Below are positions 6,901 to 60,359 of a stretch of 64,000 nt of DNA, in pieces; the first letter of the stretch is position 1, and each line of letters starts with the position of its first letter. The notes below the pieces were generated by a model. That model had not been told where the DNA came from. It searched no databases and was given only the letters and a program-made list of their open reading frames with translations. The DNA is taken from NCBI GenBank assembly GCA_963924565.1, contig OZ004608.1:6076001-6140000 (forward strand), read 5' to 3'. A program made the translations under genes and the position numbers. Source of the DNA: Ascidiella aspersa (lineage: Eukaryota).

Positions 6901-6992
6901 ACGTCCAATATTGTTTATACCGAGAAATTAACATTGGGTTATTTTTCAAACTATTGTAAGGAGGCTTTCACTGGTATTGCAGTTGTTTGGGC

Positions 6993-25900: not shown

Positions 25901-26212
25901 ATACAAGAGTTGTTGTTTGTGCTATTTAACAAAAATCAGAACACAGTGCGAATAACAGTATTTCTCATGAAGCACATTATTTATGAAATTGTTTCAGATA
26001 CTAAGGGTCAAGTCTATGAAGCGAATCTAAAGTTTTAGGTAATTACCTTGCACAGAACCCCAACTACACCTACAGAAAATATAAAAGTGAATTAATCAGG
26101 AAGAATAAAACTCTAAATTTACGTCCAATATTGTTTATACCGAGAAATGAACATTGGTTCATTTTTCTAACTGTTGTAAGGAGGCTTTTATTCGTATTGC
26201 ATTTGTTATGGA

Positions 26213-38210: not shown

Positions 38211-41200
38211 CCTACAGTATATGGCTGTGTTGCGAGCTAAAAAGCTTTTTAAACTGAATGGGCATATAATAAAACTCGTACGAATGTTCCACTAAAGGCA
38301 ACCTTATGATAACCTCGAATACTATAGTTGCATATAGCCTATTGATTCCAGACAAACTGTAAAACCGCCTCTTCCTATGGTGTATGTGACGCATTACACT
38401 TTGCAAGATACTCAGGAATTGTGTGGGACAAAGCCCTGGCGGAATTGTTTATAAAATGTAGGTTTCAAATAGGTTTTAAAAAAGTTTAACAGAGTACAAG
38501 TGCGTTAAAAAAATGTACTTCTTCTTAGACATGATAGAGTGCTGGCTCGCACTGCTTGCTCTTTTGCAATGTTATGATACTCGAAACCCCAGTAGGTAAA
38601 CGTGGTCGATGATCTTACAATATTCCACGAGTTTGTCGTCCACCAGTATATCGGGGGTTTACCTTAACCCTAGGCCGTCAGCGTGAAGCAATTTAAAAAA
38701 TTTTCACTATTTAATTTTTTCTTTGTGCTGTCATATATTTTCTCTCGGAAACATTTTAATGGTTAGACAACATTAATCTTTTTATATGAAGCCGCCAGAC
38801 ACAGTTTAACGTTTTGTTAAGCTTAAATTGATTTTAACAGCTCATGTTGCAAAACGCAACATTAAAGAAGTCTAAAATAACCGCACTCCATTATGTTGTT
38901 CTATCCGTTTTGTGAAAGAAACTTTTGACCAAGAACATTAGTGTTTTTTAAATTAACTTATTTGCCACAAATAAACGACTGGGTAAAAATCTGTGGCAAC
39001 ATTTGACATAATAAAGAAAAATCCTATTTTTTTTTAAATGTTTCCCTGGGACCAAATATTTTTAACCCCTTTAATGCTTTTAGCGGGATAACCTCCAAAA
39101 GTACCTGGAGCAAAAAATACACAAGGTTATCGATGCCCGAAAGATGTTTGGTTGCAATATTGTAACTTTGTAGGGCAGTGTTTATTCAATTTTTTTTGTT
39201 TTGTTAACCCCTAGCTATCTTCAGATTTCATTCAACCTTGTCTCATGATACGATAAAACTAACTTGTCTATATATAACTGCACAAAATGTCTTACTGCAG
39301 AGCTATCATCCATTTCTGACGATTCACCCTTATTCACCCCTTTTAGTTGGTTCACCCTGCACAATTTTTATTCACCCTAGGGTGAACCATCCATCTGTTT
39401 AAGAAACATGTTTTAGGTTGTTTAACGTCACTTTCGCCTTTGGCACAAAAATGCTACGTTTTTTTTAAATACGCCCATCACCGGTAAGTGTCGCTTTCGC
39501 ACAACTAAGAAATCTAATATTTGCGCTGGTTAATTTGCACAGAGCCTGACTTCGGGAAAACTCAGTAAAATCGGCGAGAACTTGAGCTTCATTTTGCCGC
39601 GACGGCAATGAACAATAATCACTAAATTTATGACATATGTAGTAAGAATAGCAAAGCCAATACTGAAGTTTAAACGTTTCGAATAACTCTTTATTTGTTT
39701 TCAATATCAGACATATGGATGATTAATCCAACTGTTGGACATGTTGTTTTATATAGAGCTCATGCTGGTCATTTAGCGTTTCCACAATGGCTTAACCAAA
39801 TAGCAAAAGTACTTTGAATCAGAGCAAAAACAACAATCGTAGTTAAGACGATGTACATCATTAACGGTGGTGAAAACAACTAAATCCCAATCTTAAAAAT
39901 GTTACTCAGGCAAACCGTGCCTACATCTAACCTCATGATAAGCTATTCAAATAACGTAATGCACAGGAAATGTGTGCAGTAGAACGTTAAGAAGGTTAGT
40001 TAAGGTAACTTTAAAAACTCGGCGGTAACTGAGCGTTTAAGGATCGCAATATTTAATTTTTTCGTTTCTCACCGAAACCAAAAAATAAATGAAAATAAAT
40101 ACTAAACAGATTTAGAATTTTGTACGTTAACTTGAAACATAGTTTTTTCAGTTTTTAATTGACTTTTGCAGAGAGCCTGACTTTAGGAAACGTAATTTAT
40201 TTCGGACTTATGATGTATTTCATATGGCCGTGATGTTGATTAAACCTGCATTTGACATATTTTATTAAATTGATTTGCCAAACTGTTCGAACACGCAGCA
40301 CAAGCGCGGTGGTTCAGAGGTTTTACAAATTTATGTTTAATAAAACCTAGCATAAATGGAACTTAGTGTAATGTTGGGTGAATTGTTGACAAAGTCCTAC
40401 AATAAGAACAATGGTTGCTTACAGAACACTTTTGCTGTGTGTCATCTGAGTTGTGTTGTTAGGATTTTCAACATTTCAACGGTTCTTCTCAATTTAAACG
40501 AAAATCCTATTGTGTCAACTATAATATACACTGTCCTGCTTTGCCTATTATTTTCTCAACTAAGAAACAACGTACGTCGATGTTTGCGAACTACTGTAGT
40601 TTATTATGTTAAGTCAGGGGTCAGCAGAGTGAATTCTATCGGCCCGCTGCATATTTCCTTAATGATGATCAAGTGCAGTTGAAAATTTGTCGGATTCAAG
40701 TACAAATTAACTTTTGCTTAATATTTTAAACTGAACAACAAATGATTAAAACTCACTATACAGTTGCATAATTGGTTATAAATTATTCGTTAGGCAAAAA
40801 TCGTGTGAACTAATTGGACAGAAAATTTAACTCCGGCTCGCTATGGCCCGATCTTACAGATAATTCGACAATTTATGTCAAAAGTGGTGGCTCCTGTGTT
40901 AAGCCCTGTAGATAAATTGGCCTCCATATATTCTTCAGGTTTTTCTTTAAAAAGTGTAGGATTAAGCGACATCGATTAAAAAATCCAGAACCTTTTATTA
41001 TTGTCGAAAATGTTATGAAATATAGACAATTTACAGGAATTTATGAAACGTAAGTCACATAGAAAATCGTGTGTTATTTTTTAGTGGCGGAATATTTATA
41101 GCAACTTTTGTAAAACTATTTATTGATACAAATTTTTACAGTAGTTAAACAAACATTTTTTCTTGTAATTCGTGCGATACAAGAGTTGTTTTTTGTGCTA

Positions 41201-41615
41201 TTTAACAAACATCTGTATACTGTGCGAATAACAGTATTACTCATAAAGGACATTATTTATGAATGTTGTTTTAGATGCTAAGGTCAGGTCTATAAACCGA
41301 ATCTAAAGTTTTAGGTATTTGCCTTGCACAGAACTGCACCTACAGAAAATAGTGCGAATAACAGTATTACTCATGAAGGACATTATTTATGAATGTTGTT
41401 TTAGATAATAAGGGTCAATTCTATGAAGCCAATCTAAAGTTTTAGGTAATTACCTTGCACAGAACCCCAACTACACCTACATAAAATATAAAAATGGATT
41501 AGTCAGGAAGCATAAAACTCCCAATTTACGTCCAATATTGTTTATACCGAGAAATTAACATTTAATTTTTTAACTGCTGTAAGGAGGCTTTCACTGGTAT
41601 TGCATTTGTTTGGGC

Positions 41616-44600
41616 CTAGTTGTTAGATTGTTCTTGGGTCCTAAACTCGACGTATCCCGGATCTTTTTCCTCATTTTCCTGGACTGGAAACACTGGGTTG
41701 GGTTTCACGTAAACGCCTTCTTCTTCGTGAGTACATTCTTCTGGACCTTAAAATACTATGGATTATCATGCAATTTGTTAAAAATTGATAAAGTATTTTT
41801 TTCTTAGGTTTTCTGTATATATTACAAACTTAATAACTTTGGTACATCACTGACTGTTGCTTAAAACGTTTTCTGAATTAAAGCATTTTTATTCTGCAGC
41901 GGTATATGAGAATTAAGGAGACAAGTCATAATTTTAGACGATTAAAATAAAAAATAATTTAGGCTTACTGTTAAATAAACTTCTTGACCTGCTTAATTAT
42001 CGCGTAACAATTCCTAGATTTGTCGATATACTTTCGTTACATCTTTTATTAGTTTTTTTTATTATAAGTGTTGCATTCAGCGATGAGTGAAATTTCAACA
42101 GCTATTCACTTCGAATTATTCCCAGATTTATTTAACAGTTTTTAAATAATCTAACAAGCAAAGTTTCGCACATTTTAAGGAGTTTAGTCCAGAGAATACA
42201 AGAAGAGTTTGCGAATTTCCGGTGGTAGTTTAGATTGAAAATAGAAACAATTTTTTCAGTCTAGAATCGCTTAATATCTTCTCCATTTCTCGGTGTATTT
42301 CGTGGCATAGATTTTAGTCTAATCGACTCATTTCGTATCCGTTCATTTTGGTGCCAACACTAAAAGGAGGACTAGTTATAGTGCACGTAGCATTACGTTT
42401 AAAATTGGTGTTAACGTAGATATGTGATGTGCTTGCTATGGGAACTTCGTAGGCACTTTCCATCACCACTTCAGACTCCTTTTTAGGGAATCTAACAATT
42501 TAGGAAATTTTTAACTCTGGGTAAATGGTCAAGCTATTGATATTAATTACATTTACAATGTCACACAAATCTTTTGTTTATTTGAAGGGCAAATTAGGTT
42601 AATTTATGTCTTTTTACTTTAAAAAATAATAGTTTCATGAGCATCAGCTTATTGAATTTCTATAAATACCCAAAACATGTTAAACATAATAATCATAATA
42701 CGTTTCGGTTGGCCATCCTTGCGCTTATTGGCAAAAGTGAAAATCTAAACAGTTGTTTTGTTTATATTAAAACGTTGTCACCCATCTCGAGCAACAGTTT
42801 TTATTCGGTTGTATGTCTTTACTTGCCTTATCTGGTGACGTAGCTGAAAAATATTTATGCCAACGGATGCCAACAAGAGAAGAACAAGAACGACTACCGC
42901 TATGGTGAGACCGTGGGCAGATTCCGTTTTAACAGACCTGTTTTGAGCTATGAATAGAGCAATAGTTAAGTGTAGTTTTCTAGGTAAATTTTATTTTCTA
43001 CAACACCCTTTGTTCTATGAGTAAAAAACGTCTTGAGGAGGGTATGACTAATTTTACCACTTTTTATAGAATCCCGGTATACACTTATATATTCCCATTT
43101 TGCCAGCATTTTATCATTAATGCCATTTTTAAACCGCTTTTCGTGTATTGCGTCGCATTATTTTTGTCGTGGCGCATTAAAGTGTATTGGCGGCATCAAG
43201 TTTAGGTCCGTGCTCCGTAACCTTTTTTACTCACGATACACCAACAGAGCCTGAACAAATTCGGCGGCACACCTCCGAAATATTTGACGACCGACAATAG
43301 ACAACATAAGCAAATATATTTATGGTTTTACGGGTTCTTCTGAAAACATCTTTAGACGGTTGGGGTGCTCAAATTGCACCCCGTGAAGTAGTGGATAGGA
43401 GAAGATTGAAGGCTTTAAACAGCATATTTCAAAAATGAAATCCAATAATTGGGTTTTGTACTTTTTTGCCTAATTTATTTTTTTGGAAGATGCTGTTTTT
43501 AACAATACTTTTTTAAAGATTATTTTTAACAATCACTGTAATACATTAACTTCGGTTTTAAGCGTATGGATAATTATCTTCGTTCAAACTTTGGTATAAA
43601 GTACACATTTACTGTCTAATTATACTCCTGGTAGTTGTACGAGTTAAATAAACTATTTTAACGTTTAAATTTGGCAATTGAACCTTACTTAGGTTCTAAA
43701 CGAGGTTGAAATATAAAAAAGGAAAGTTGCACACCAAAAAAGGAAAGTTGCACGTCAAAAGTAGCATTTAAAAAAAAGAAAAAAGTAAAGCACATCGAGA
43801 AGCATCGCGACACACATGACATGGTATAGCGGCATAGCAGTTTGCCACGGCACACCGGTTGCGGAGTACTGTTTCAGACGTTGCGTGGAAGTGCTTAAAG
43901 TTAATTAGTTTGGCTTCCTCAGGGCGCAGAACAAAAACTGATACTACGTGTAAAAATAACTCCCTAATTTAAACGCGAAATTAGCGCACGTTGCAAAGTT
44001 TTAACCCACTCGTATTTGGTTGCCGGTATATTTGACAAAACCGTAGCCCGACCCAATAGTTTGTGTTAGTTTTTCGGGTTTCTGGTTTTCGCATTGTGAA
44101 AATTGATAGTTGATGAAATCATAACGTTATGGTTTTTATATTTTATATTAGGATTTGTGCTTGATTAAGAAAGTCTCAAACAACTTTATTCATATGTAAG
44201 TGGTTTAAGATATGTTTTTACTTTGCTTCTCTTTTTGGCTCGATTAATGAATATTTTTTATCAAATGTAAAACCATTGCAAAATCACATGAGTCAGCACC
44301 AACTTACCTGATACAGTGGTGGAAGTGGTTGGAGCCGCGGTGTTAGCTTTGGCAGTAGAAGCGGAATTCACGGTGGTCGTTTGTATTGCTTTGGTTGAAA
44401 CTGAAGTAAACGGTGAAGAAGAGACAGAGTTGGTTTGAATTTTTGCAATGCATGATAAAAAAATTAGTTTTGTTACACATTTTCGTCGCGACAATATATG
44501 TATAGCGCCTTTTTAACGCCTATAGTGAAGTTTTACAAAATTGCAATTTTTCTTGCTTAAACTAGTTATTTTAATTTTTGCACAGTATATTCGGTTATAA

Positions 44601-45610
44601 TGTTTTAAGTAAAGCTTACTAATTCAAAAATTTAGCTGGACGCAACTTGGTGCCGTTTCCCCGAAGATTTTAAGGGAACCTTTAAACAGAAATCATTTAT
44701 CCTTGTCACATTATTTAGCTATAACATTCGATTTATTTTTTTGTATTCGATTTGTAGCATTTTTCAATTGAGCTGTCCGGTTTCTGTTTATTTCTATTAT
44801 TTACAAAACCAATAGGATGTTTTTACATACCAATGGTTCTCTGGCATATGCACCCGAGTGCTGTGGTGGCGCGAGGAATGCCATACCACAGTAAATTGTC
44901 AGGATATACCCATAGTGACGTAACTCTTACCAACAACATTATTTCATCCGTTGTCAGGTTGCCCATGTCCCCAGGACGTATTTTACACTGACCAGTTCTA
45001 CTTTAAACCAGCATAGCAAATTTGGAATTTTGATAATAAAAGCGAAATATATTAAGTCAAACCGTTTCGTGTTTAATATGTTATCTTTGTTATATTTTAC
45101 TCACCAATAGTTCTTTGACAAATGTACCCGAAAGTTCTGCCGCAAGAAATGTCATTCCACAATAAACTGGTACTCCAACTAGTCCCCATTGTGACGCACT
45201 CCTCTATTCCTCCATGGTTGTCAGGTTGGTATTTCCCCATGACGTATACACCAAAGCTGTTCAATCCATCCATCGAAACTCACCATCATTTGCATTCCGC
45301 TTCAAACCGATGTAAAATCCCTTGTTTGGAACTGGAAACATACGTTGGTTAACGCCACAAGTGATGTAAAACTACAAGCAATTGAAAGGTTTTTGCACGA
45401 ACCTGTAAAATTTGTCAGAAAATTCTGAATCGTTGAAGAGTTGACTTTTGCTAAAGTCGCGTTTAGATTTCTACAAGCGGCACTTGCTCCATCAAAATTT
45501 GTCGAAACGCTCACAGCAATGTAGTATTCCTTCCCGCTTAACTGGTGCCAAGTAACAGCTGTTGTTGCTGTCAGAAGATAACACGCAACTAGTAATGAAG
45601 CGATTCGCAT
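41616..45610 (-). pseudogene. C-type lectin receptor B3 pseudogene
   Basis: Exon 1 45610-45403 is open. Exon 2 45331-45105 has TGA at 45263-45261 plus a 1-nt deletion before QPD. A second decayed CTLD half-exon lies at ~44980-44831. The stalk exon (~44435-44308) lost its acceptor by deletion. TM 42947-42827 and tail exons 42491-42397 and 41746-41616 remain open. Confidence 0.8.
43208..43871. mobile_element. hAT-like MITE (paralog of 8615-9248)
   Basis: TIRs ccgtgctccgtaacc / ggttgcggagtactg. Confidence 0.7.
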
Positions 45611-46350
45611 TTTCGTGAATTGATTTTTAAATATTCTAAACGAAACTAAAAACAAAAATTATAAACTGAACCGATTTTGGTTTCAGTGATTGTAGGGTAC
45701 ACGACTAATTATCGACTAAGGGCTTTTGTGTTTAAGGTGCAATTTACGCTGTATCGGCTTATGCCACAGATTTATTGTCTACTCGCACCAAAATGTAAAC
45801 TTACTGGCTTGCATTTTCTCTGGGCGGTCAGCACAGAGATTTGTGTACTCAAGACCGCTATCTGCTTGAAAACTATCTCTTCTTTGTTATCGACTCGTGT
45901 TGTTCACGGTTTTGATATTTGCAAGTATTGTCGCCGGTCTATATTTTAACTGGTTGTTCGCTTATCAGATAATACAATTAATAATCACCAGAAGCATTGT
46001 GGTTAGCAAACGAGTATACCCACGCAACCTTAAAACGAGAGTCAGAAGCTTCAACATTAACCTTCGTGTCCCACAATTGCATTGAAGGTTGATTTACCGA
46101 CCACTTCAAAACTTATGCACTATTAGCAACGGAAAACTAATAAATATATTTGCAAAACTTAACCTTACATCATGATGGACTTTGATTCAATCAAATAGTT
46201 TCAACTCTATACTGCTTTCCATATCTCTTTATGATGGTGCCAGTGTATAGATGAAATACCCGGTGTTTCCCAGGTAGACTGTCTATCAGTTTAATTCTAA
46301 CTGATAAATGGCTGCAGTTGAGCCAGACATTTAAATTTATACCACCGGCA

Positions 46351-46417
46351 ATACTCACGATCTATTGTGAATACTCACGATCTATTGTGAATACTCACGA
46401 TCTATTGTGAATACTCA
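46351..46417. repeat. 20-bp tandem repeat, about 3.3 copies
   Basis: Unit atactcacgatctattgtga. Single copy at the paralogous site near 58250. Confidence 0.9.
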
Positions 46418-46880
46418 TTGCGTTTTGCGTGGTTATACAAAATGAAACAAACTTTCATACCGTGGGCTCTTCGTCACTTTTGTATAAAAAAATTATCATC
46501 GGAAACTTCAGTCAATATGTGAACGGTAGTTAGCAATTTTTGTATAAAACATTCAATCGTAAATCAGCATTACGTCAGCTTCTTACTAACCCAAAATATT
46601 TTAGGAAGAAATTTCTATATTGTTACTGTCACTATCTAATATCTTTTTAGTGCTAGGATATTAACGCACGTTGCATAAAAGTGAAACATGTTATCTTTAT
46701 TATTACTTGCTTACTACGACTATTATAGGTATTACTTCAAATTCAGTCTTATTCCAACTGTGTTTTATTCCGATTGTGATGTTCTTCTTATCTCGGTCTT
46801 ATGAATGGAATCCGAATTTTCACACATTCCTTCTTTTTGAATTTATTATGGCAAAATCAAAATAAGCAGATTTGTCTTAC

Positions 46881-46963
46881 CTGATAGAGAGGTGGATTCC
46901 AAAGTAGTTGGAGCCGTGATGTTAGCTTTGGAAACGGAAACGAATTTCACGGTGGTTGTTTGT
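46881..46963 (-). pseudogene. Orphan 3' fragment of a mucin stalk exon
   Basis: Reads QTTTVKFVSVSKANITAPTTLESTSLS followed by G|GTAAGA. Its 5' part is replaced by MITE sequence. Confidence 0.65.
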
Positions 46964-47244
46964 TTTGTACTTTTTTCGCCTAATTTATTTTTTCAGAAGA
47001 GACTGTTTTTAACAATTTTTTTAAGATCATTTTTAAAAATCAATGTAATACATTTACTTTATGGGTTTTATGCGTTTTGATAATATTTCTTCAAACCTTG
47101 GTGTATAAAGTACACGGTTACTGTATATTTATACTCCTGGTGGTTGTACGAGTTAAATAAGGTTTTAAACGAGGTTTTTATATTTTACATACGTTTACAA
47201 CAACTGTAATGTACGACGAGCTCATTTGTTTCTCTATATTATTC

Positions 47245-47575
47245 CCCTCTGAGCTTATGTAGCTCAGTTGGTAGAGCGACGGTCTCCGTCTGACCGAGGT
47301 CGTGTGTTCGAACATCACCACAGGCTAGTTTTACGAACAAGATGCAGTAGACAAGAGTGCTATGATTGTTTCTCGACTTGTTACCCTCTGAGGCTGTACA
47401 GCTCACTTGGTAGATCAAAGTTGGAATCTCACCACGGGCTAGTTTTACAAACAAGATGCAGTTGGCAAGAGTGCTATGGTTGTTACTCGATTTGCCTTCT
47501 TTTAACCAGTACAGCTCAGTTGGTAGAGCCACGGTCCCGGTATGGCCGAGGTCGTGAGTTCGAACCTCACCGCAA
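47245..47575 (+). mobile_element. Three tandem tRNA-like (SINE/pseudo-tRNA) units
   Basis: A box tagctcagttggtagagc and B box gttcgaac. Anticodon-like stems cggtc/gaccg and cggtc/ggccg, loops lacking U33. Units 1 and 2 share a 3' tail. Confidence 0.65.
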
Positions 47576-48049
47576 TTTAGACTTTCTAATGCAGAAAATC
47601 CTATGTTATATTAAGGATTATTCAAAAACAGCAAATTCAAAATATTACACATTCTAAAAAAAACTAATTTTACTTCATGTAAATATAACAATGCGAGGTA
47701 CCGGTGTGTTAAGTCGGTCAGTTGGGTGAAAAAAATTTCAGGCGATCCAAGTAGTTTTCAGTAGCTTTAAAATTAAACATTAGATTAGACATGAATTATA
47801 AACCGTGTGCGCTACATAAAGCAAAAAAGCAAAACAAGCTTATCCTGTGTGTATATACATTGCCTATACATTGAAGGAAGATAATTTAGATAGGTTCGGA
47901 AAATAAAGGGCAGGTATAGGTGATCCTATGCGTACGGCATATTTTTTATTGGACAAATCACGCTTAAAACAAGTATGTTAATTTCGTCGTAGTATATATA
48001 GAACGACTTTTGTGACTTTTCAGTTAAGTAATACGTCTGGCAATTTTTA

Positions 48050-48445
48050 AATGGCTCCGGCTTCAGCCCCGGAGTCATAAAACTCAATCCTTTGGCTCCG
48101 GCTCCAGCTCCGGAGCCATCAAACACAGACCCAATGACTCCGGCTCCAGTTCCGGTGCCACCAGTCACTTATTCAATGGCAAGTTTTAAAAATTGCTTTT
48201 GGCTAATTAACGTTGGAGATGGGACAAATTATAATTTCTTAGCTTTAGCACCACAAATTGAAAAATGGCTCCAGCTCCGGCTCCAGCTCCGGCTCCAGCT
48301 CCACAAAAATAATAAAAAAGGCTCCGGCTCCTGCTCCAGCTCCAGCTCCAAAAAAATAATAACAATGGCTCCGGCTCCGGCTCCGGCTCTGGCTCCAGAG
48401 AAAATGCTTAGATCTGGGCTCCGGGGTTCCGGCTCCCCAGTCCTG
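48050..48445 (-). mobile_element. Terminal fragments of the GGAGCC-repeat hAT family
   Basis: 48170-48445 is the reverse-complement homolog of 62583-62830 (terminus CAGGACTGGGGAGCC). A further GGCTCC array lies at 48050-48170. Confidence 0.75.
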
Positions 48446-48488
48446 GTTGAAGGCACCTTTACGTAAAATAGCCAGTTGCTATATTTAC

Positions 48489-48687
48489 CGAGCACATTGG
48501 GAGTCTTGCTTTTTACGCTACTTCCAGCCCAGTTGATCGTCCTACATTCGTACAAACCACCGTTTCCTGAGTGGTTGTTGTTTCTAATGTAAAGAACAGA
48601 GTTGCCAGTTGATCCTTCCTTTGTTGTAGTTAAAACTTGATAAACTACAGTTGATGAACTTGAAGGTACCTCAGCATTGTTTGTTTC
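48489..48687 (-). other. Orphan exon encoding the C-terminal half of an Ig-like domain
   Basis: ttttcag|ETNNAEVPSSSTVVYQVLTTTKEGSTGNSVLYIRNNNHSGNGGLYECRTINWAGSSVKSKTPNVL-G|gtaaat. Matches the L-x-I..G-x-Y-x-C-x3-N-x-A-G pattern of Ig E/F/G strands. Confidence 0.6.
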
Positions 48688-50902
48688 CTGAAAATACTAA
48701 GATTCCATCTCAGTTTACAAACTGTTTTCATAGCAACTGTTTGCTGGTTCGTTACGTTTTGTCAGTATTCTGTTTTACCACCTTTTGTATAGGGACATGA
48801 TTTTTTGTGCTTTTTTTGACGTGTTCCATTTTTTCAAAAAAACAACAACGAAGTTTGGCGATATAATCTTAATTTAAAATAATTTACTTGTTTTTTATTT
48901 ATTTTAATATTAAGTAATAAAATTGGATCTTAATTACAACGACAATGCTCAAACGGTTTACTTAATCACTCTTTCGGTATCGAACAACAATATGTATCAA
49001 TCATCCTTAAACCCAACCACGGAATTAAATTGATGCCTAGAGAATAAAACTATCGACCTCATAGCTTGAGATTACAACAGGGTAGTAACTATATCATTAT
49101 AAAGTGTCTCTCGACCCATTGGTCGCGAAGGTTTTCCGAAAGCTTTAATTGATGATTGGAATACAAATAGGTTGTTACGTCACCGACTTACTTGGTGATG
49201 ACGTCACCGCCTTACTTAGTGATGACGTCAGCAAATATCGGCAAGTAAGGCTTCAGTTATTTACTGAGTTCGTTGCCGGGAAATAGCTTATACAAATAGG
49301 AGAAGCATGTGACTCATTTTAAATGATCCCAACACAACAGGGATACAAATAAACTTTGTAGGCGTCATACTAACATTACGACATTGAACATTGAATTTCA
49401 ATCCTGTTTATTTAATTCTGAACAAGTGTTAATAGTATGGCAGTACAAAAACGAATTCCTTATTATTGTTCAACATACATCTTTGCACGTATTTTAACGC
49501 ATGAAGAAAAATCAAATTTATACTACTTGAACAATACAACGCTAAGTTGAGCATGCAGGAAACTGGATAGCTTACGTTCACGTTAATTTCGAGCAAGATA
49601 TTTGAAAGGAAAAAATACTAACTGTTGAAACATTTTTTTAAATAATAAAATCTCATCGATAGGCGTTTGTAGTTTGACAAAACGTTTGGCCCAAAACATA
49701 TTTAATTATAATGCTTTAGGCTTAAGTCACAAACAAAAACTATGAAAAGTATAATCTAACTGCTTGACAATGGAATACATGTTAAAAGTATTGTTTGTTC
49801 AGGCAAGTTTAGCAAGTTTTAACAACAAATTAGGTTATAAAACATACAAGAAAAATAGGAGCATACACTTAACAAGCTTCACTTCAAACAGGAAGTGCTT
49901 GTCAAGTGATAAATTGCAGCGCGACTATGAGTATCCATACACCATATTTTTTTCGTCTTGACAAAGACTTGGCAACCTCAGTAGCGCAGTATCCAATCAA
50001 TAACTTAACGTGCTTAAATTGTGCTACCGTTGTGAATATACGGGGCCTGTATGACATTAGGTTGGGCATTTTAAGTGGTGATATGCTAACAAGTACTAAC
50101 AGTATGTATAGTTTAATTTGGTATGGAGGATCAAAATTTCAGCACACCTATTTGCCTTTAGCTTCGTGGATTAGGCTTAGCATAAAATATTTAAAAATGA
50201 CTTATAGAAACCAGTTGGCTTAAGAAACCTGCTGTTTTATCTATATAACGGAGTCTAGATACATTCAAGGCAAAGACGCCAAAGCGGTTCGGTTATTTCG
50301 AAAAATATCTCTATATCTTAAATTATACGACAAGAATTCAATTAGGCTTCCATAGACCCCTAAACCGAGTCCAAGTAACCCACCAAGGGGCCCACGGACC
50401 CAAGTTTAACAACCCCTGTGCGTTTCATTCATCGAATTACCAGGGGCGAGAATAGCGTTGCTTGACCACCACCTGGCTAAAAATCGGATTTTTTAAACTA
50501 ATCGGCAGTTTATACTTCACTTTAGTGAACCTTGAATTCATAAATATTTCCCCCTTATGTGTACGATTTTATCACGTATGTTTTGCCGGCTTTATAAAAT
50601 GTTCATGGAGATAAACTAATAATATTACAGAGGTTGTAAACGTGACAAAATTAAAGAAAACACAATGCAGTTTCTCAAACGGTATACATTATTATGAGCG
50701 TCAATATTCAAAACCGTATAATTTTAAAATGTTTGACGCGGACACGCTTTATATACATTTTAAAAATAACTGTATATAACAATGCTGAAAATTGACAACC
50801 GAAGAAAGAAATAGATTTAAACAATAGAAAGATACAGAGCCTAATTTAAAATTAACTCGGCGATAACAAATCAGGCAAATATTGTTACAGTAATCTCTAC
50901 AG

Positions 50903-51332
50903 CAGCGGTTCCCAAACTGGGGTTCGTAGAGCAGTTTCAGATGATTCGCAAGGAGAATTAGTCTTTAAGTTTTTAAATATTAGGCTTGAAAAAATGTTTT
51001 GAAACTTTTTCACAGTGGAAAAAAAATGTTTAGAAAATGTTTTTAAACTTTTTCTGTCATCATTATTAGTCCATAGTTATGCTTTATTATTAGATCATAT
51101 AACGTTTTTTATAATGCCTCTTGCGACATAAAGCATCTATTATGCTGTGTTAACTGCTATAAGCGAATTTTTAGCATTCGTTAGAAAGTTGTTACATTGG
51201 AAGAATCGTGACTGTAGTAGTGTACTACAAGAAACATGGGTCAATTAAGCCTTGAATTTTTATAGGGCCGCGAAATATAAAAACAATTGCGATCCACCAG
51301 GTAAGATTTTTAGAAAAGTTTGAGAACCGCTG
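50903..51332. mobile_element. hAT/Charlie-like MITE
   Basis: TIRs cagcggttcccaaact / agtttgagaaccgctg. Flanks ctctacag / atctggag are a partial 8-bp TSD. Confidence 0.8.
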
Positions 51333-51416
51333 ATCTGGAGCTAAATGCCGGCAAACTAAACAAGTGGGTAGCACTGAACAGAAAACAACCTCCGAGCAGT
51401 TGTTTTTGGATGATTC

Positions 51417-54400
51417 CTAAGTACGTGAAGTTTGTTGGGTTAGGTTTTGGTCGCTTGAAGTTTCCTGGCCTGAAACGCCAGAAGTTTTGCCCACGCATGA
51501 TATCTTCTTGCGAATGACGTCATTCTTGACACAGTAGCAATAGAACACCGCCAATCCCTGAAGCCCGTTCACCAGCGTGTGGATGTACGTCATCACTTCT
51601 GACGTCATCTCGTCGCCGAGACCTGGAGCAAAAATAGCTTCAATTATGTGGTAAATTTATTAGAAGATAAACGGCTTGCAGTGCCTGAAACTAAATACAA
51701 TTCTAAAGCAATTTCATCCAAATTTTAGCATTTTGGGAATATTGTCATCCTTATTACAAACGTAGCTTTGTTTAGGTTTGCCACAAAGCCATTCATTTTC
51801 TTTAAATTGCATTTCATTCTTAAAATCCTAAAAATCACTATATTTTTCTAAAATGTTTTGATTTTATGTGCAGCTTAAATAATTTGTTTAGAAAGTGCTG
51901 TGAGATAGACAATTTTTTTATTTTTTTTTGTATTGCGTTTCGCCTGACATTTATTCTGTTTTCATTTATAATTATCTTCAAAAGACGCCAAGTGATTATA
52001 TTGTAGGTCTTCAAAAACCGATCAATTTCCTTTGAAAAGTATTATACTGTCTTTGAATTTATTCATGAAAATACGAAACAACCCTGGTTCCCATTGACAA
52101 ATTTTACCTGTAAAAAATCCAAGAACCCACGTTGTTCCAAGAACCAACATCAAGAAAAAGAAGGCCTTGAAAAAGGTCTTCGCGTCTTGATCCACTTCCT
52201 CCGGATTTCTCCGCTTCTTGTTCTTCCTGGAGGAAAGGAGCACCCACGATCCGATGAGAGCAGAGAGGAAGTTGACCAGCAGACAAATCGCGATCGGCAC
52301 GACCACAGTGAGAATGAACACGTTGGTGCCAGGATCCAACCAGCATCTATCGAATTTGCTTCCCCCTTGTTGTGTAACGTTAATGTCCTTGACCTTGATG
52401 TAGTTTCCTGTTGGAAGACCAGCGGCGAGCGCCGATCCGACCACAAGTGCCGGGATGAACCATCCCACCACCAAGAACACCTTTAATCGCTTTTGAGAGT
52501 CTTGTACCTGAAATCCAATCGGGTTCGTCATGGCCATTGTCATTCGGATTCCGTCGATCGTAAACCAGCAACCTAAAAAAAACAAAATAAGGCTCAGCTA
52601 AGCTAAAAATGGAAAAGATGAAACACCGAATTTAAATTAGAAACAACATAGGCCATAAAGATTGATTAAGAACCAAAACTGTTCATAATACAAAAGGAAA
52701 AAACAACAACAAACGTTCTGTAGGTGTCCTTAATGTATTAAATTAACGAATGTAAACAGAACTAAACTATAGTAATCTCAATATTGCAATTAAGATAATA
52801 AATAGACAACAAATTGCTGAAAATTAGACGGTTATAAAAAAAACTCAAGATAATTTACCTTCAAGATATTCAATAGAAAACAAATAGTTGAAAACTAAAC
52901 ACTTTAAATTAAGAAAATATGAATAAAATAGGCATCACAAGTTAAAAGGTGAATGAATGTAGTTGGAACAGAAACATCTATGTCATGAGGTTAAACCGAC
53001 AGAATTTTCCAGGATTCAAACTTTCCAAAAAAGGACGGAGAAAGAGAAAAACGTGCAAATATTTATTTCCCAATTAGTTGTCACCTGACGCAATCAAGAA
53101 GTAGTGGATGCTGGCAGAGAGGAAGACACATCCGACTTGATGAAGGATTGCTGCATCCTGGAGGAGATTGGAGACGTGGAGGAGGAGGAGGGAGAAGACG
53201 ACGCAGAGCTGGATCAGGGTCCGGTCGCTGGCGATCTGCCGCTTGTGACGTAACAGCAGCGCGATGCTGAGCACGAGGAAGCAAACTGAGATCGACTCGC
53301 AAACGTACGAGGTGACCTAAAAATAAATGCACTATTTTTAAAACAACGGAGAAAAAATAAACTAAATATTATAATAATAGTCTTAGGGAAAAATTTGTGC
53401 TATAGCGTGAAATAATGTAATGTCTTTTGATAGTATAATAATATTAAAATATGGGTTTTAATTTGACGCAGCATTAGAATTACTTCAACATTTAAAGATA
53501 TAATTTATCGCTTTCAAAGTTTTTTCAATTTCGAGTTTTTTCTATCATGTCTGCCATTTACTTTTTTAAGTTTTCTGATTTTTGAATTTGCTTTATTTTG
53601 ATTTTTTGCAACTGTGTTTTGTTTTGTTAAAGTGCTGTCTTAACTATTTGAGGTAACGTTCTGATTAATTAAATCGTTTTCGAAACCGGTTGAATTTTTC
53701 AAAAGTAAGGCATTCCTGTATGACAAGAAAGTGTGTTTAAAAGTTGATTGAGTAAATTAACTAAAAAAGTTTTGTTTGGGGATTTGGCAATTTAGCATTA
53801 AATGTTTAGGGTTATCTTTATATAATTTACAAAAAGAATAAAATTTGGTTGTTTCAGTTAATTCTTAGGAATTTCGTTGCTCCTAAACAAATCACCCTAA
53901 TAAAAGGTTTAGTGTGAAATCACATGAGAGATATGTCTTTCTCTGTTTGTTTTTATATTGAATTTTTGTTCCAATACATTATATTATAATTTGTCAATCT
54001 CTTACTTTAACTCCAAGTGAAATGGCTCTAGTTTTCATTGAGAGCAGAATAGAAAACACGGTGAGGTGATCACATTCGCAGTGGACACGGTCGCCTATCA
54101 ATTTGCTACGGCATCCAGCTGTTGAATAAGCCGACGATCTGTCGATGAAACTGCAAGCATACTCCACTTTCTGCAAGCTAAGCTTTGCCGACGATATTAC
54201 ATTGTTTTGGCAAACCCCGCGGGATGTCTGTTCGGCGTTTGTAACTTGCCGCGAAAATGCGACGGAGCCCTTTAGGCTGGCACCAGTTTTGGCCTTGTAG
54301 CCTGACACGCTGGTGAAAACCTTGGGGCTTAGTTCAGCATAACGTTTACTGGAATCTTGCTGACCGCTATTGACAAAAGCGCATGATGTTAAATTGGTTT

Positions 54401-54700
54401 TAAAGACAACTTCAAATATTATGATAGCCCCTGATAAATTGCCGGCGATCTGGAAGGTAGCATTTACCGAGGATTTCTCAAAATCGACCAACCCTGACTC
54501 GATTGTTCCGCCGCTTGACGTTACAAGTTTCACCACAACTTGTACGCTGACTTCTGTGAGGTTGTATTGTAATGAATAGTTGCCTTTCGGAAGTTGCCTC
54601 AGGTTGTTGTTTTCCAATGTGTTAAGTTTTTGTAAAGAAACAATATCATCACCGTCAGACGCCGTTGTGTTGACCAGCTTCCTTATTTCACGATCGATTG
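51417..54700 (-). CDS. Adhesion GPCR module: GAIN/GPS + 7TM
   Basis: Exons 54700-54006 (ends CSFI..YSTAGC..CECDHL/TVFSILL, GPS with intact HL/T site), 53316-53085 (TM1-3, HYFLIAS), 52572-52108 (CWF..GWFIP..CWL..LGTTWVLG), 51622-51417 (NGLQG..stop). Phases 1/0/1/1 are consistent. No start codon or signal peptide of its own. Confidence 0.9.
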
Positions 54701-55626
54701 CTACAACCAAATATTATTATTTTATTATTCGAAAACTAATCATACAGCTTACAAGGCATTATTTCGCATTAAATAGGTGCAAATCTTATGTTGAAGTTTT
54801 GTTTGTGCGAAATTATAAAAAGATAACATTACAAATAGGATACCATGATTTTAAACAAAACGTGCAACTGCTTCCTCGACCTAACTTCTTAAATATTAAC
54901 AAAACGAACATTTCTATATTATTTGGCTTGTCGGTCTGATATTATATACGTTCATATAGCAAGAGAGGGACTGGGCTATACGTTGCGCACGTTTTGTACA
55001 CATTTCTCACTCTTAAGCGAGAAACTGCTCATTACGCCAGAATAGAAAGAAGTCATGTGCTCCCAGACAGAAAAAACTGGTCTCTTTCTATGAGAGAAAA
55101 ACGGAGTAATGAGAGCGCGTCTCAAGCGAGCGTCTCTTATACATGGTAATAGCAATTTGTTTAGGTTGTAAACAATACACAGGAAAGTTGTTTTTGTCAA
55201 AGGTAACCATTCAATAAAAGAAAAACAGTAAAGTACATCAAAAAGCATCGCGTTACACCTGACATGGTTTAGCGCCATAGCAGTTTGCCGCGGCACACCG
55301 GTTGCGGATTACTGTTTTAGACGTTGCGTCCTATCTGGCTGCCGGTATAGTTGACATACCATACCCCGACCCAATTGTTTGTGTTAGTTTTCTGGGTTTC
55401 AGGTTTGCGCATTGTGACAATTAATAGTTGATTGAAATAATAACGTTATGGTTTTAATTATTTATCGTAGGATATGTGCATGTTTAAAAAAATTCCTAAA
55501 CAACTTTATTCGTATATAAGTGGTTTGTTATATGTTTTTACTTTGCGTATCTTTTTGGCTCGATTAATGTATATTTTTTTCCAATGTAAAACTATGGCAA
55601 AATCACATGAGTCAGAACCAACTTAC

Positions 55627-57883
55627 CGGATACAGTGGTGACAGTGTTGGAAGTAGTTGGAGCCGTGGTGTTAGTTTTGGCAAAGGAAACAAAATCCACG
55701 GTGGTCGTTTGTTTTGTGTTGGTTGTAACTGAAGTGAATGATCGGGAAGAGACAGAGCTGGTTTGCATCGCAATACTTGTCTTACCCAGATCTGGAAGTG
55801 AAATGTTCACTAGGGCTTCACTTTAACACTAAAGCAACTTAACGCGAAAGCGAATCGTATATGCAACTAAATAAGTTTAACTCGTTTTGGGGTGGTCTGT
55901 TGGCTTTAATTTTTGGAATGCATGATAAGGTTTACTGTTTTTATTAAATATGGCAAAACATCCCTAGTATAACGGCCCTATTTGAAGTACAATGTTGGCA
56001 TACTTAAACTAGATAAACTCAAGTTCGACGCGTATTTTAAAAGTAGTTTTGTTACATATTTTCTACGCCACAATATAGCTATAGCGTCTCTCTTAGCGCT
56101 TATAGTGAATTTTTACCAAATTGCAAATTTTCCTGGTTAATCAAGTTATTATATTTTTTGCACAGTATATATGGTTATAGTGTTTTAAGTAAACCACGCA
56201 ACTTGGTGACGTTTCTCCAAAAAAATGTAAGGACACCCTTAAACAGAAATCCCTGATGCGTCTAAAATAACTCCCTAATTTAAACGCGAAATTAACGCAC
56301 GTTTCAAAGTTTTAACCCACTCCAATATGGTTGCCGGTTTATGTGACAAAACCGTAGCCCGATCCAATTGTTGCGTTGGTTGTCTGAGTTTTAGGTGAAT
56401 TGTTAAAATTGATAGTTGATTAAAACAATAACATATTGTTTTTTATATTTATATTGGAGTGTGTGCATGTTTAAAATAATCTCAAACAACTTTATTCATA
56501 TATAAGTGTTTTAAGATATGTTTTTACTTTGCTTCTCTTTTTGGTTCGATTAATGAATATTTTTTTACCAATGTAAAACCATTGCAAAATCTCATGAGTC
56601 AGAACTAACTTACCTGATACAGTGGAAGTAGTTGGAGCCACGGTGTTAGCTTTGGCAGATGAAGCGGAATTCACGGTGGTCGTTTGTGTTGCGTTGGTTG
56701 TAACTGAAGTGAATAGCGAGGAAGTGACAGAGCTCGTTTGCACAATACATTTCTCAACAAGGCCTGGAAGCGAATGTTTATTAGGTCTTCACTTTAACAC
56801 TAAAGAAACTTAACGCGAATCTTATATGGAACTAAATTAGTTTAAATCGCTATTTTGGGGTGATCTGTTGGCTTGAATTTTTGCAATGCACGACAAGGTT
56901 TACTGTTTTTATTAAATATGGCAAAACATCGCTTGAATAACGGCCCTATTTGAAGTACAATATTGGCCTACCTAAACAGATAAACTATAAGTTCGACGCG
57001 TTTTTTGAAAGTAGTTTTGTTACACATTTTTGTCGTGACAATATAGCTATAGCGTCTCTTTTAACCCTTTTACAATTTTTCTTAGTTAATCTAGTTATTA
57101 TATTTTTTGCACTGTATATATGGTTATAGTGTTTTAAGTAAAAGTTATAGAAAATTAAAAAAAATAGCATGACGCAACTTGGTTACGTTTGTCCGAAAAT
57201 TTTAAAGTCACCCTTAAACAGAAATGCCTAATCCTTGCCACATAATTTTAGCTATTCTGATCTATGATTTGTAGCTAAATGATTTGTAGCATTTTTCAAT
57301 TGAGATGTCCGGTTTGTGTTTATTTGTTTTATTTAAAAAACCAATAGAATATATTCACTTACCAATGGTTCTCTGGCATATGTACCCGAAGTTTGTGGTG
57401 GAGCAAGGAATGTCATACCACAGTGAATTGGTACTCCAGGAAATACCCATAGTGACGCAATTCTCATGAACACCAGTATTTCCTCCGTTGTCAGGTTGCT
57501 GTATTCCCCATGACGTATACATCAAACCTGTTCCATCCAACCATCGGAACTCACCACCATTTGCATTCCGCTTCAAACCGATGTAAAATCCCTTGTTTGG
57601 AACTGGAAACATGCGTTGGGTAAGGCCATAAGTGATGTAAAACTACAACTATAAGTGGAAGATTTTGTCACAAACCTGTATATTTGGTCAGAAATTTCTG
57701 AATCGTTGAAGAGTTGACTTTTGCCAAAGTCGCGTTCAGCTTACAACAAGCCGCACTTGCTCCATTAAAATTTGTCGAATCGTTCACAGCAATATAGTAT
57801 TCCTTCCCGTTTAACTGGTGCCAAGTAACAGCTGTTGTTGCAGTCAGAAGATAACACGCAACTAGTAATGAAGTGATTCGCAT
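55627..57883 (-). CDS. Lectin head B4 (signal, QPD CTLD, two mucin stalk exons); probable N-terminus of the adhesion GPCR
   Basis: Exons 57883-57676, 57602-57363 (QQPDNGGNTGVHENC..WYDIPC), 56763-56614 and 55791-55627, all open. The last donor G|GTAAGT is phase 1. No TM exon follows before 54700. Confidence 0.8.
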
Positions 57884-60359
57884 TATCGTGAATCAATTTT
57901 TAAATATTCTAAACGAAACTAAAAACAAAAATTAAAAGACTAAGCCGATTTTTGTTCCAGTGATTGCATTGAAAATTGATTTACCGACCACTTCAAACTT
58001 ATGCACTATTAGCAACGGAAAACTCATAAATATATTTGCAAAATATAACCTTACATCATGGTCGACGTTGAGTAAAGTCAAGTATTTTCTACTCTACACT
58101 GTTTTCAATATCTCGTTGTTGTGGCACCAGTATATAGCCTATGCTAGATGAAATGGTGTTTCCCAGGTTCACTGTTTGTCAGTTTAATTCTGACATATAA
58201 AAGACTGCTGCAGTTGAGCATGAATTTTAAGTTCATATCACCGGCAATAAACACGATCTATTGTGAATACCCATAGAGTTTTGCGTGGTTATACAAAATG
58301 AGGCACACCTGCATACCGTGGGCTCTTCGTCGTTATCTCAAGTTACGTCATTCTCTGGTAGGTTATTAAAGAGGCGGTAAGGCAAACGGCATCAAGCCTA
58401 CATCGCGCCTAAAGTTGTATTATATGCGCGTTCTTAATAACAGAGTAAATTAACTGAAATCGCGTATTGAAAGCCAAATTACAGCATTTAATCATGACGA
58501 AACTATTTAAAAATTTATGCTAAAAAGCTATCACAAACAAAGGAATCCGTGAATTTACTGATTACGCTAAAAATTCGCAGCTTTTTAAAGACAATCAGCA
58601 TAAAAGTTTAACTTTGCAAAGGCGATGACTTTACTTTGATTTTACGGTTAAGCAAACGTTGCGTTCAACGTCAGACAAACCTGTTAGAAATAAAAATTGA
58701 TTAAAGGTTAAAACCGCTGTAATAAACATGATATTTTACGAACTCTGCTTAAATTTTGCGTGATTAAACACACTGTAAAACTCCATTCAGCTGTGGCCTC
58801 AATCAAATTTAAATTATATTTTCGGGAATGTTAGTTGTACGATATTGGTTTAAGTGTCCTGATGATTAATTAAAGTAGGTTTAGCAACCGCTACACAGGT
58901 CGAACGACGCGGAAACAAATGGCTTAAAGGCACCAAAGAGAAAAGTTGGTTGTGTTACGCTTCCTTAAAACTGCAATATATGTGAACTAATTTGAGTAAA
59001 GATTTTAGTTATCGATGTACAATTACTACACATAAAAGTAATAAAAATAACAAAACGCTTCCATACGTTTTCTTAAGACACAAAACGCATCATAAAGTTC
59101 GAAAGGAAGTATCACCGTGTCCGCCAGCCTTTGCAGCAATCCGGCATTTTTAACCCCTAGGTTAAGAGTATGAAATGATCATCCGAAACTTCAGTCTATA
59201 TGTGAACGGTAGTTTGTACTTTTTGTATAAAACATTGAAACGCAAGTCAGCATTTCGTAAGCTTCTTACAAACCCAAAACATTTTTGAAAGAAATTTCTA
59301 TATTGTTACTGTCACTATCTAATATCCTGCGAAACATTATTGTAAGTTTGCCCGAATTTCGTTTTTCTGGTTGTCCACTGTGGTATTTAATAAAAGCTTA
59401 CATATAGCAATGAAGTTTCAAGCTATCTGATTGATCTTTTTAATTTTGTGTATTGAGTGCTTAGCTTATCTGATATATGTAGTCTTCATATGGGTTGTAA
59501 AACTGTAATAAAACCCTATATTGTATTAATGCTCAGTGTTAAAACTCTTGATTTGCACCAGCAGAGCTCTTTATTCTTTTCTGAAATACAATTCAGTGTC
59601 GGGTTTCGGCTTTTACAGCATTGTGGTCGTTTTAGTCAAACCCTTTTAGTTCCTTGTTATAACGTAATAGTTTTCACTCTACAGAAACAATGGCCTTATG
59701 TAAAAGACTTGATGTAATATCCGTCATTTGGCACCTATGTTCGGCAATGAAGTATGTAATGGGGAAACAAGCGGTGACAGCGCGTATACAAGAGAGAGAA
59801 GAGAAAAGAGAAAAGAGTTCACTTCGCGTTTACGCATGCGGAAGGAAAATTACAGGGCACCTACCGGACAATAAATAAAGAACTAATTAAAATATATTCC
59901 ACCAGCTTCGTCAGTATATCTCAGCAAATACGACAACTTAGTTGTATGGGCATAAAAACAAAAATCACCAAATTAAAACCATGAAACTCCACTAAACCAT
60001 AATTATGTCCAAAACAACAACAAAAGTATAATAACGCATCAGCAAACAGCTGAAAGGCGGCAAAGGAAAAACCGAAAGAAAAGGTGAAGTAAAGGCAGAA
60101 ACACGATACCAACACGAAAATAAGAACACACAAAAAACACGGTAACGCCAACACATTTGGGGCAGTAACATTTTTGAATCTTAATTTTGGCTTTAATTTT
60201 ATTCGTCCACCTTATGTCTTCGCAAGTATCTATGCATGAAAGACCGGGGCTGCGCAACAAATTGTAATTCAACGTAATATTTGGAAATTATTTAGTTGTT
60301 AAGGTTTGTTGTATATCGTAATGATGCTACATCGCTGTGATTTCACTTGAACCATCGTT

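Follow-up and report, generated by a model that had tools for sequence, protein, structure and literature searches.

A MITE in a lectin-gene intron of Ascidiella aspersa is interrupted by a block bearing an adhesion-GPCR gene fragment

Adhesion GPCRs are textbook receptors built by domain shuffling, and the classical route to mosaic cell-surface receptors is exon shuffling in which phase 1-1 extracellular modules are inserted into introns (the Gilbert/Patthy model). To our knowledge, shuffling of adhesion GPCRs has almost always been deduced from domain trees that give neither breakpoints nor direction nor mechanism. In fusions of the TRIM5-CypA type, coding sequence inserted in a host gene is spliced to the host promoter and 5' exons; TRIMCyp itself lacks introns and is a retrocopy with a poly(A) tail. 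For the amphioxus adhesion GPCRs with C-type lectin N-termini, domain shuffling has been proposed as the origin (PMC2246102). In a survey of the sea squirt Ciona that includes lineage-specific 'unclassified' adhesion GPCRs, 21 of 30 models have a GPS domain only; three of the unclassified receptors have other N-terminal domains, and no lectin head was reported for them (PMC2396169).

The window analysed here, 64,000 nucleotides long, holds part of a lectin-receptor gene cluster of Ascidiella aspersa in which a MITE in a lectin-gene intron is interrupted by a block of about 8 kb bearing an adhesion GPCR. The locus resembles the Gilbert/Patthy model in that a gene fragment sits within an intron and the combination reads through, phase 1 being common to the two partner exons. 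It differs in keeping a base-level scar (the split MITE, 13-19 bp of duplicated target and donor introns at 83-86% identity), so that polarity and breakpoints can be read directly rather than inferred from domain trees. With the amphioxus receptors it shares a C-type lectin domain ahead of a GPS and 7tm_2 module, but that study lists domain architectures and traces no event (PMC2246102), whereas in the present fusion a family of single-pass lectin receptors supplied the head, and paralogs with upstream FN3 and Ig exons supplied the GPCR part. As in Ciona, tunicate adhesion GPCRs are numerous, without vertebrate orthologs and mostly defined by their GPS and 7TM core (PMC2396169); the difference is that a defined lectin head is attached here and the attachment event is visible. 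The likeness to TRIM5-CypA is that the insert takes the recipient promoter and N-terminal exons, and that hallmarks of insertion tell the direction. Unlike TRIMCyp, the block moved as DNA, since its introns and flanks are kept. The locus is a well-resolved instance of ordinary exon shuffling, an expected kind of event and no surprise.

The interrupted element is a genuine MITE. Its 15-nt terminal repeat has 494 forward and 509 reverse sites in the genome (about 1000), against 2 and 4 for the reversed control, and paired termini sharing the inverted repeat lie 0.1-1.2 kb apart. Both termini are found in the lectin gene B1 and in full-length dispersed copies. The intact B1 copy (8616-9248) is intronic, with the last stalk exon (9770-9650) on one side and the TM exon (8398-8189) on the other. 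A preliminary description had the element as about 400 bp long and starting near 8860 in B1; the full-length dispersed copies set its termini further apart, at 632 bp. The terminal inverted repeat starting CAGTG and the hundreds of copies of 0.1-1.2 kb liken the family to hAT-like MITEs. One full-length dispersed copy has a perfect 8-bp target-site duplication; another has none, and the B1 flanks agree at 5 of 8 positions. What sets this case apart is that the element is a passive target and marker only: its transposase is not implicated, because the break falls in the middle of the element and not at its ends. The MITE runs unbroken across the break point in B1, as first described. This holds for at least 12 paralogous lectin introns and for dispersed elements located on other contigs.

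In the fusion gene the MITE is split as proposed, its pieces (46962-47176 and 55161-55314) standing about 8 kb apart. The left piece corresponds to B1 8861-9106. Positions 46962-47160 are 84% identical to B1 8860-9050, and 47160-47176 repeat the B1 motif at 9090-9106, which bears out the end that had been placed near 47176. The piece is an internal fragment lacking the first 245 bp, because the B1 element starts at 8616 and not near 8860; it also carries a 40-bp internal deletion specific to this copy and absent from a sister copy on the same contig (P1, C2:6.011-6.026 Mb). The right piece corresponds to B1 9088-9248. BLAST finds it from 55174 (B1 9109-9263, 81%), while base-level alignment moves its start to 55161, where 13 nt copying B1 9088-9100 precede a loss of 8 bp; the suggested resumption near 55180 was thus too late, and the suggested terminal inverted repeat at 55314 was correct. 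Sequence beyond 55314 is that of the B intron, again as described: a 14-bp MITE-adjacent flank (55315-55328) is common to B1 9249-9263, and 55329 onward equals B1 9387 onward. In this lectin-gene intron (55315-55626, minus strand) the fusion lineage lacks about 125 bp present in all intact paralogs.

At base level the two halves overlap by 13-19 bp rather than abut. Twelve of the 13 bases of 55161-55173 are repeated within 47160-47176, and all of them in the P1 copy, so that the same target bases stand on both sides; the length is inexact, as the left copy is 6 bases longer and the right copy is short of 8 bp. The overlap looks like a target-site duplication. Halves from different subfamilies, or an extensive overlap, had been named in advance as signs of independent insertions; instead the overlap is short and both halves resemble the lectin-intron copies, with 81-87% identity to the intronic paralogs, as against only 60-80% for dispersed copies aligned to the B1 copy.

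Between the halves lies a C8-type GPCR gene fragment (49272-55160, minus strand) comprising 445 bp of donor intron, the GAIN/GPS exon, three 7TM exons with the stop codon and about 2 kb of 3' flank. A tandem family of adhesion GPCRs on contig C8 matches it over exons and introns alike (49272-55158) at 83-86% identity. The five C8 loci compared are collinear with the fragment, and all end at 55158-55162, where it meets the MITE, and at 49272. The proposed search of 47177-55175 for a donor with matching introns has therefore found one, but the match covers only 49272-55158, with a further weak match at 48974-49145. Past the breakpoints the C8 genes remain homologous to one another, for about 2.9 kb on the right and 0.76 kb on the left; a copied C8-type fragment therefore entered the lectin intron. 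Relative to the complete C8 genes the fragment starts mid-intron. Upstream, the C8 genes have two clear FN3 exons and Ig exons that are borderline or under the Pfam cut-offs. A first candidate lectin exon scores under the cut-off (Lectin_C, E 0.0097, 17.1 bits); a second is without Pfam or PDB match and shows a short match of W-D-C...F-Y-I-C-E type to the window lectin. FN3 and Ig domains, and possibly a divergent lectin domain, thus appear to precede GAIN in the donor genes, and the fusion therefore amounts to a head swap.

The chimeric gene lies on the minus strand. Lectin exon 1 (57676-57883) provides the start codon, the signal peptide and the first part of the C-type lectin domain in a Met-initiated open frame; lectin exon 2 (57363-57602, phase 1-1 in the model) provides the remainder. 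Exon 1 alone has a weak Lectin_C match under the Pfam cut-off (E 0.0016, 19.6 bits), and exon 2 identifies a C-type lectin-like domain (Lectin_C, PF00059, 43.6 bits against a cut-off of 22.6). Two stalk exons follow: a Ser/Thr-rich, mucin-like one homologous to a B1 stalk exon (56614-56703, phase 1-1), and the final lectin-derived exon (55627-55791), which ends in phase 1 with a GTAAGT donor site. The GAIN/GPS exon (54006-54700) matches Pfam GPS at 30.1 bits (E 6.8e-7, cut-off 22.5, residues 187-223 of the exon), and its translation contains a His-Leu|Thr (HLT) motif, the predicted cleavage site. The three 7TM exons and stop codon occupy 51417-53316 (exons 53316-53085, 52572-52108 and 51622-51420). 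Two of them score 62.0 and 22.2 bits for 7tm_2 (PF00002, cut-off 20.6), as expected of an adhesion GPCR (family B2) core; the TM7 exon alone has no match. The impression that the 7TM exons are visibly richer in GC than the lectin exons reflects a real difference of modest size (48-56% against 41-48%; the GAIN exon has 45%).

Phase 1 is found at the end of the last stalk exon and at the start of the GAIN exon, whose acceptor site is identical to that of the donors; this reproduces the donor Ig-to-GAIN junction. Splicing of the hybrid intron would therefore be in frame. The complete splice model of 766 codons (2298 nt) is open and the ORF is intact in all three fusion copies, with Ka/Ks of 0.30-0.38 among these copies and 0.32-0.39 against the donors. 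A predicted protein of lectin head, stalk, GAIN/GPS and 7TM would result, and the phase-1 junction and open model back the earlier suggestion that the block captured a lectin head. About 6% of one RNA run yielded 2 reads, both on lectin exons, with none on the GPCR part and none joining 55627 to 54700; the matching phase and the open ORF speak indirectly for expression.

On the far side the locus records more than a clean single insertion. The stalk-exon relic noticed there in the preliminary description is real: it is a truncated A-type stalk exon (46881-46970, minus strand; first placed at 46881-46963) of which the 3' approximately 86 nt and a GTAAGA donor site remain. It forms a second junction, at which the MITE interior meets, with 2 bp of microhomology, the middle of a stalk exon belonging to the adjacent A-type gene. 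Matches to this segment in at least 9 paralogs all cease at 46967, after which the sequences differ. Since this side has neither the first 245 bp of the MITE nor the TM and tail exons of the lectin gene itself, at least one further rearrangement must be assumed. The left part of the block (47177-49271), save for 48974-49145, is without donor homology. It holds a tRNA-Thr-like SINE pair (47252-47650, plus strand, by an ARAGORN tRNA call), a dispersed repeat with more than 20 genomic copies (48036-48451) and an Ig-like exon relic (48493-48696, minus strand), whose closest relatives lie at 24.0-24.5 Mb on C8 with 75-77% amino-acid identity. Judged by these matches the block is composite, with only 49272-55158 (weakly to 48974) donor-like and the leftmost 1.8-2.1 kb not. 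It was first taken as one GAIN-7TM/Ig unit; the GAIN-7TM portion is indeed donor-like, but the Ig exon comes from another family.

Taken together, the sequence comparisons support the view that the GPCR piece came to the lectin gene and not the reverse. The same order of events, a GPCR block landing later inside the MITE of a lectin gene, had been put forward before, and three independent grounds now speak for it: that the unsplit MITE is the native state, that a donor family exists elsewhere and that lectin-cluster DNA flanks the block on both sides. We propose, and consider probable, that a C8-type GPCR fragment was copied into the MITE of a B-type lectin intron, with loss of the membrane anchor and triplication following. 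The ancestor would have been a minus-strand B-type lectin receptor gene with a C-type lectin head, mucin-like stalk exons, a TM exon and a tyrosine-bearing tail, and with a MITE of about 630 bp between the last stalk exon and the TM exon. A DNA copy of the 3' half of a C8-family adhesion-GPCR gene, reaching from a point in the intron 445 bp ahead of the GAIN exon to the 3' flank beyond the 7TM exons, would have been inserted into the middle of this element, duplicating 13-19 bp of target. Such a duplication points to a staggered double-strand break repaired with copied DNA, which is the mechanism we infer. In the same event or later, the recipient's TM and tail exons would have been lost by a deletion spanning from the MITE interior to the middle of the stalk exon of the next gene. 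The locus would later have been triplicated, with gene conversion between the copies.

Two more fusion copies exist on the same contig, P1 being one. The fusion is older than the triplication and therefore need not have formed at the window locus. We see about an even chance that, with the same direction, it formed elsewhere in the cluster (for example at P1) and that the window copy is a secondary duplicate trimmed by deletions. P1 retains the left MITE fragment undeleted and the downstream A-type TM and tail exons lost in the window copy; the right junction is common to all three copies; and the divergence between the window copy and P1 is mosaic (identity of 90-92% in the left flank, 98-99% in the core and 78-92% in the head). 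The recipient gene has no surviving close sister without the fusion; identity to the best intact paralogs is 83-87%. A birthplace at another locus leaves the reading of the event itself, a copied GPCR fragment inserted into a lectin-gene MITE, unchanged.

Transport of the block by a retroelement, through LINE-type 3' transduction with a long and variable target-site duplication, seems improbable. The 13-19 bp duplication is within the LINE range and a short A-rich run lies at the gene-sense 3' end of the block, but there is no real poly(A) tail on it and no LINE sequence at either end, and all three introns are kept together with the 445 bp of upstream intron. The retention of every intron, and block ends made of ordinary donor-intron sequence, argue against any transposon or RNA intermediate. 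It is very improbable that two independent MITE copies or truncations flank the block by chance and say nothing of direction. The family does have hundreds of copies, and the left piece is internal with a foreign left flank; against this, the pieces share orientation and order and meet within 19 bp of a 632-bp element, both are closer to the lectin-intron copy than dispersed copies are, and the right piece keeps its paralogous flank and intron. We give even less credence to the view that the fusion came first and that the intact lectin genes derive from it through a precise deletion removing the block between short direct repeats. The repeats beside the block could mediate such a deletion, but at least 12 paralogs are intact and the GPCR fragment, set against complete C8 genes, starts in the middle of an intron; moreover, dispersed MITEs on other contigs are unbroken across the site, which makes contiguity the native state. 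A chimeric assembly join of lectin and GPCR contigs, conceivable in a highly repetitive tandem cluster, can be dismissed, since the same right junction recurs in three diverged genomic copies and the same left junction in two, short contigs from two DNA runs cross 55173 and the window contains no runs of N.

The insertion reading thus gives breakpoints, direction and mechanism for one chordate event, through a split transposon, a duplicated target and alignable donor introns. Its aftermath is also visible. The recipient's membrane anchor was lost, the locus was triplicated, and gene conversion would keep the signalling half uniform (Ks 0 to 0.03 among the fusion copies) as the lectin heads drift (Ks about 0.15, 82% amino-acid identity, Ka/Ks about 0.65). 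More speculatively, and we hold this to be rather unlikely, GAIN-7TM may be a portable signalling cassette repeatedly set behind varied sensor heads here, with this locus as the first base-resolved scar of the process and the products forming a variable-head, constant-tail receptor set, possibly for glycan or non-self recognition. The event offers a concrete, testable model for the diversification of tunicate recognition-receptor arrays.

The fusion gene combines a lectin head and stalk with a GAIN/GPS exon and a seven-transmembrane (7TM) core, and lies on contig C2 of a 308-Mb genome. The minus strand carries all genes discussed. The window spans C2:6076001-6140000 and contains, arranged in tandem, single-pass lectin receptor genes that alternate between two types, A and B. 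B1 (4877-14003), B2 (24209-33096), a third copy termed C (39460-46643) and a fourth head termed D (55329-60359) are B-type, with A-type genes between them. In the reference gene B1, two C-type lectin exons (about 11240-10731) come first, followed by a Ser/Thr-rich stalk exon (9770-9650), a transmembrane (TM) exon (8398-8189) and tyrosine-bearing tail exons. The fusion gene has two stalk exons where B1 has one, the product of an old internal tandem duplication spanning 55329-57232 (55329-56257 against 56321-57232, 79% identical). Its GPCR part comprises the GAIN/GPS exon (54006-54700; Pfam GPS, HLT motif) and three 7tm_2 exons, and its reading frame ends at a stop codon at 51417-51419.

This part sits in a block of about 8 kb separating two parts of a MITE. 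The preliminary description located the split pieces correctly, as alignment to B1 established: 46962-47160 corresponds to B1 8860-9050 (84% identity), the B1 motif at 9090-9106 recurs at 47160-47176, 55174-55329 corresponds to B1 9109-9263 (81%), and from 55329 on the window matches B1 from 9387 on. The element is contiguous in B1, as had been claimed, and longer than had been thought, occupying 8616-9248 in the intron that follows the last stalk exon and precedes the TM exon. A left terminus at B1 8860, which would put the second junction exactly at the transposon end, was rejected when alignment to full-length copies moved it to 8616. When the dispersed copies are aligned, they form a family whose terminal inverted repeat is 15 nt long and starts CAGTG. 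Its full-length members measure about 815 bp, and a perfect 8-bp target duplication flanks one of them. Genome-wide, this terminal 15-mer was counted 494 times in forward and 509 times in reverse orientation, against 2 and 4 for a reversed control. A segment of about 125 bp (B1 9264-9386), 15 bp past the right end of the MITE, is present in every intact B-type paralog and in none of the three fusion copies, either because the B lineage gained a small insertion or because the fusion lineage lost the segment.

Base-level alignment with the two sister fusion copies identifies the left piece as B1 8861-9106, with a 40-bp deletion private to the window copy. The right piece starts at 55161, where 13 nt repeat B1 9088-9100 (12/13 identical), skips 8 bp and then runs to the terminal repeat, ending at 55314. 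This gives the two pieces an overlap of 13-19 bp, resembling a target-site duplication; a 12/13 match at a set position in AT-rich sequence is estimated to arise by chance with a probability of about 1e-4, offsets allowed for. At full length, a 551-bp query finds matches in paralogous lectin introns on C2 alone, with at least 12 contiguous copies there; at sites dispersed over other contigs, parts of it match. Identity to the intronic paralog copies is 81-87% for both pieces, whereas dispersed copies are only 60-80% identical to the B1 copy, and the right piece retains 14 bp of paralogous flank. The higher identity and the retained flank argue that both pieces derive from a single intronic copy. 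In an empty-site search, intact paralogs reached at best 83-87% identity to the fusion intron or MITE pieces. The reverse history, in which intact lectin genes arose from the fusion by deletion between flanking repeats, is ruled out: dispersed MITE copies are contiguous across the break point, so the unsplit state is native and the split state derived.

The source of the block was sought by whole-genome DNA search. This returned two near-identical sister copies on C2 (P1 and P2), a more distant GPCR family on contig C6 and, on contig C8, tandem adhesion-GPCR genes at 22.69-22.83 and 25.21-25.28 Mb. The C8 family aligns collinearly with 49272-55158, introns included, at 83-86% identity, which makes it the likely donor family. 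In each of the five C8 loci compared, homology to the window breaks off at 55158-55162 and again at 49272, while homology among the C8 genes themselves extends past these breakpoints, by about 2.9 kb upstream and 0.76 kb downstream. This continuation indicates that the window holds a fragment cut from a C8-type gene, starting in the intron 445 bp upstream of the GAIN exon. Upstream of the breakpoint the C8 genes carry two FN3 exons with clear Pfam matches and two Ig-like exons with matches borderline or below cut-offs; a candidate divergent lectin domain there was not confirmed. The fusion swapped the donor ectodomain for a lectin head and mucin stalk. The proposed direction, GPCR block into lectin-gene intron, is supported by the native unsplit MITE and the C8-type source of the fragment. 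One donor gene has a minisatellite of about 5.4 kb (period about 28 bp) upstream of it, on the reverse strand of C8:22778001-22788000 (L046); its neighbour has a short version of about 0.5 kb.

Had the insertion been simple, the block would be followed by the first 245 bp of the MITE and, after these, by the TM and tail exons of the lectin gene. These are absent, so at least one deletion took the recipient's own membrane anchor, during the insertion or afterwards. At 46962-46970 the MITE interior instead runs straight into an A-type gene, in mid stalk exon, with 2 bp of microhomology at the join; this A-type segment has at least nine paralogs, and every one parts from the window exactly at 46967. 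P1 has the same junction, with the A-type TM and tail exons still behind it; in the window these are deleted and the upstream region of the next gene begins at 46643. The retained stretch at P1 (C2:6008600-6009643; L031/L035 joined, positions 8600-9643) comprises the truncated stalk exon and then lectin-type TM and tail exons, so that behind its one lectin head this locus has two possible membrane backbones.

Capture by a Helitron or other transposon was rejected, since one end of the block is ordinary donor-intron sequence and the other unique sequence; no terminal repeats, Helitron ends or poly(A) tail were found at the block ends, and all introns are retained. On these grounds the favoured mechanism is a duplicative insertion at the DNA level, made while a staggered break was being repaired; both the 13-19 bp duplication and the minor losses of sequence at the joints would follow from it. 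End-joining would then explain the second junction, which shows 2 bp of microhomology.

The leftmost part of the block, from 47177 to about 48974, is not donor-like. It includes a dispersed repeat and, on the plus strand, two tandem tRNA-Thr-like units at 47252-47650 (ARAGORN: tRNA-Thr, anticodon CGT, at 47252-47327), probably a tRNA-derived SINE. An Ig-like exon relic on the minus strand (48493-48696), 2.7 kb downstream of the GPCR stop codon, is open in the window but carries a frameshift in P2. The closest relatives of this exon make up a large array at C8 24.0-24.5 Mb (75-77% amino-acid identity), a family in which no GAIN exon was detected; origin as the donors' own Ig exon was rejected, identity there being 38%. 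The leftmost part either came along with the GPCR fragment or was a separate addition.

The junction preserves the reading frame. The last lectin-derived exon, stalk exon b (55627-55791), has a GTAAGT donor site and ends in phase 1; the GAIN exon, whose acceptor is identical to that of the donors, starts in phase 1, and the donor Ig exon likewise ends in phase 1. A canonical splice-site search gives one consistent eight-exon model from 57883 to 51420 (2298 nt, 766 codons); database searches were made exon by exon rather than with the joined model. The four GPCR exon cores are open in all three fusion copies. Across the GPCR exons, Ks is 0.032 both for the window against P2 (Ka/Ks 0.38) and for P1 against P2 (Ka/Ks 0.30), and fusion copies against donors give Ks 0.13-0.18 and Ka/Ks 0.32-0.39. 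These ratios and the open exons indicate constraint on the GPCR part after fusion. Between the window and P1, the coding exons in 51420-54700 differ by seven nonsynonymous and no synonymous changes, six in the GAIN exon, a lopsided count too small for a test. In one RNA run, of which about 6% was read, two reads fell on the window, both in lectin exons. Low-depth contigs from a second organism (X3) cover the GPCR exons and stalk region, with none over 54800-55400. One X3 contig matches right of 55563 and has 215 unrelated letters to the left, which may reflect a structural difference in that animal's intron or a paralog origin. Function of the predicted chimera is plausible but unproven.

The three fusion copies are mosaics. 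P1 (C2:6010634-6025815) is 90-92% identical to window 46715-48885, with a 5-kb indel in P1, and 98-99% identical over 48884-56740. P2 (C2:6189871-6198464) is 96.5% identical over 48216-56740; leftward of 48216 it continues, inside the dispersed repeat of the block, into the middle of another B-type gene. Comparison of window 54500-58600 with C2:6024-6027.5 kb (P1) and C2:6196-6200 kb (P2) shows that past about 56400 the window head is only 78-92% identical to the P1 and P2 heads, which are 99-100% identical to each other. In the GPCR coding part the window equals P1 (Ks 0) and differs from P2 (Ks 0.032), whereas in the lectin domain P1 equals P2 and the window differs (Ks 0.144-0.156, 82% amino-acid identity, Ka/Ks 0.64-0.69). 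Such a pattern implies that the three loci have exchanged sequence by gene conversion, the tail staying constant as the head diverges. The fusion predates the 8-10% divergence of the shared left flank and need not have formed at the window locus. The event is older and more complex than the preliminary description proposed.

Adhesion GPCRs with Lectin C-type domains are known from amphioxus, where an origin by domain shuffling has been suggested (PMC2246102). Lineage-specific adhesion GPCRs are numerous in Ciona, and for most of them only the GPS and 7TM core is known (PMC2396169). The present fusion is one more case of exon shuffling, unusual in that its scar is still readable.
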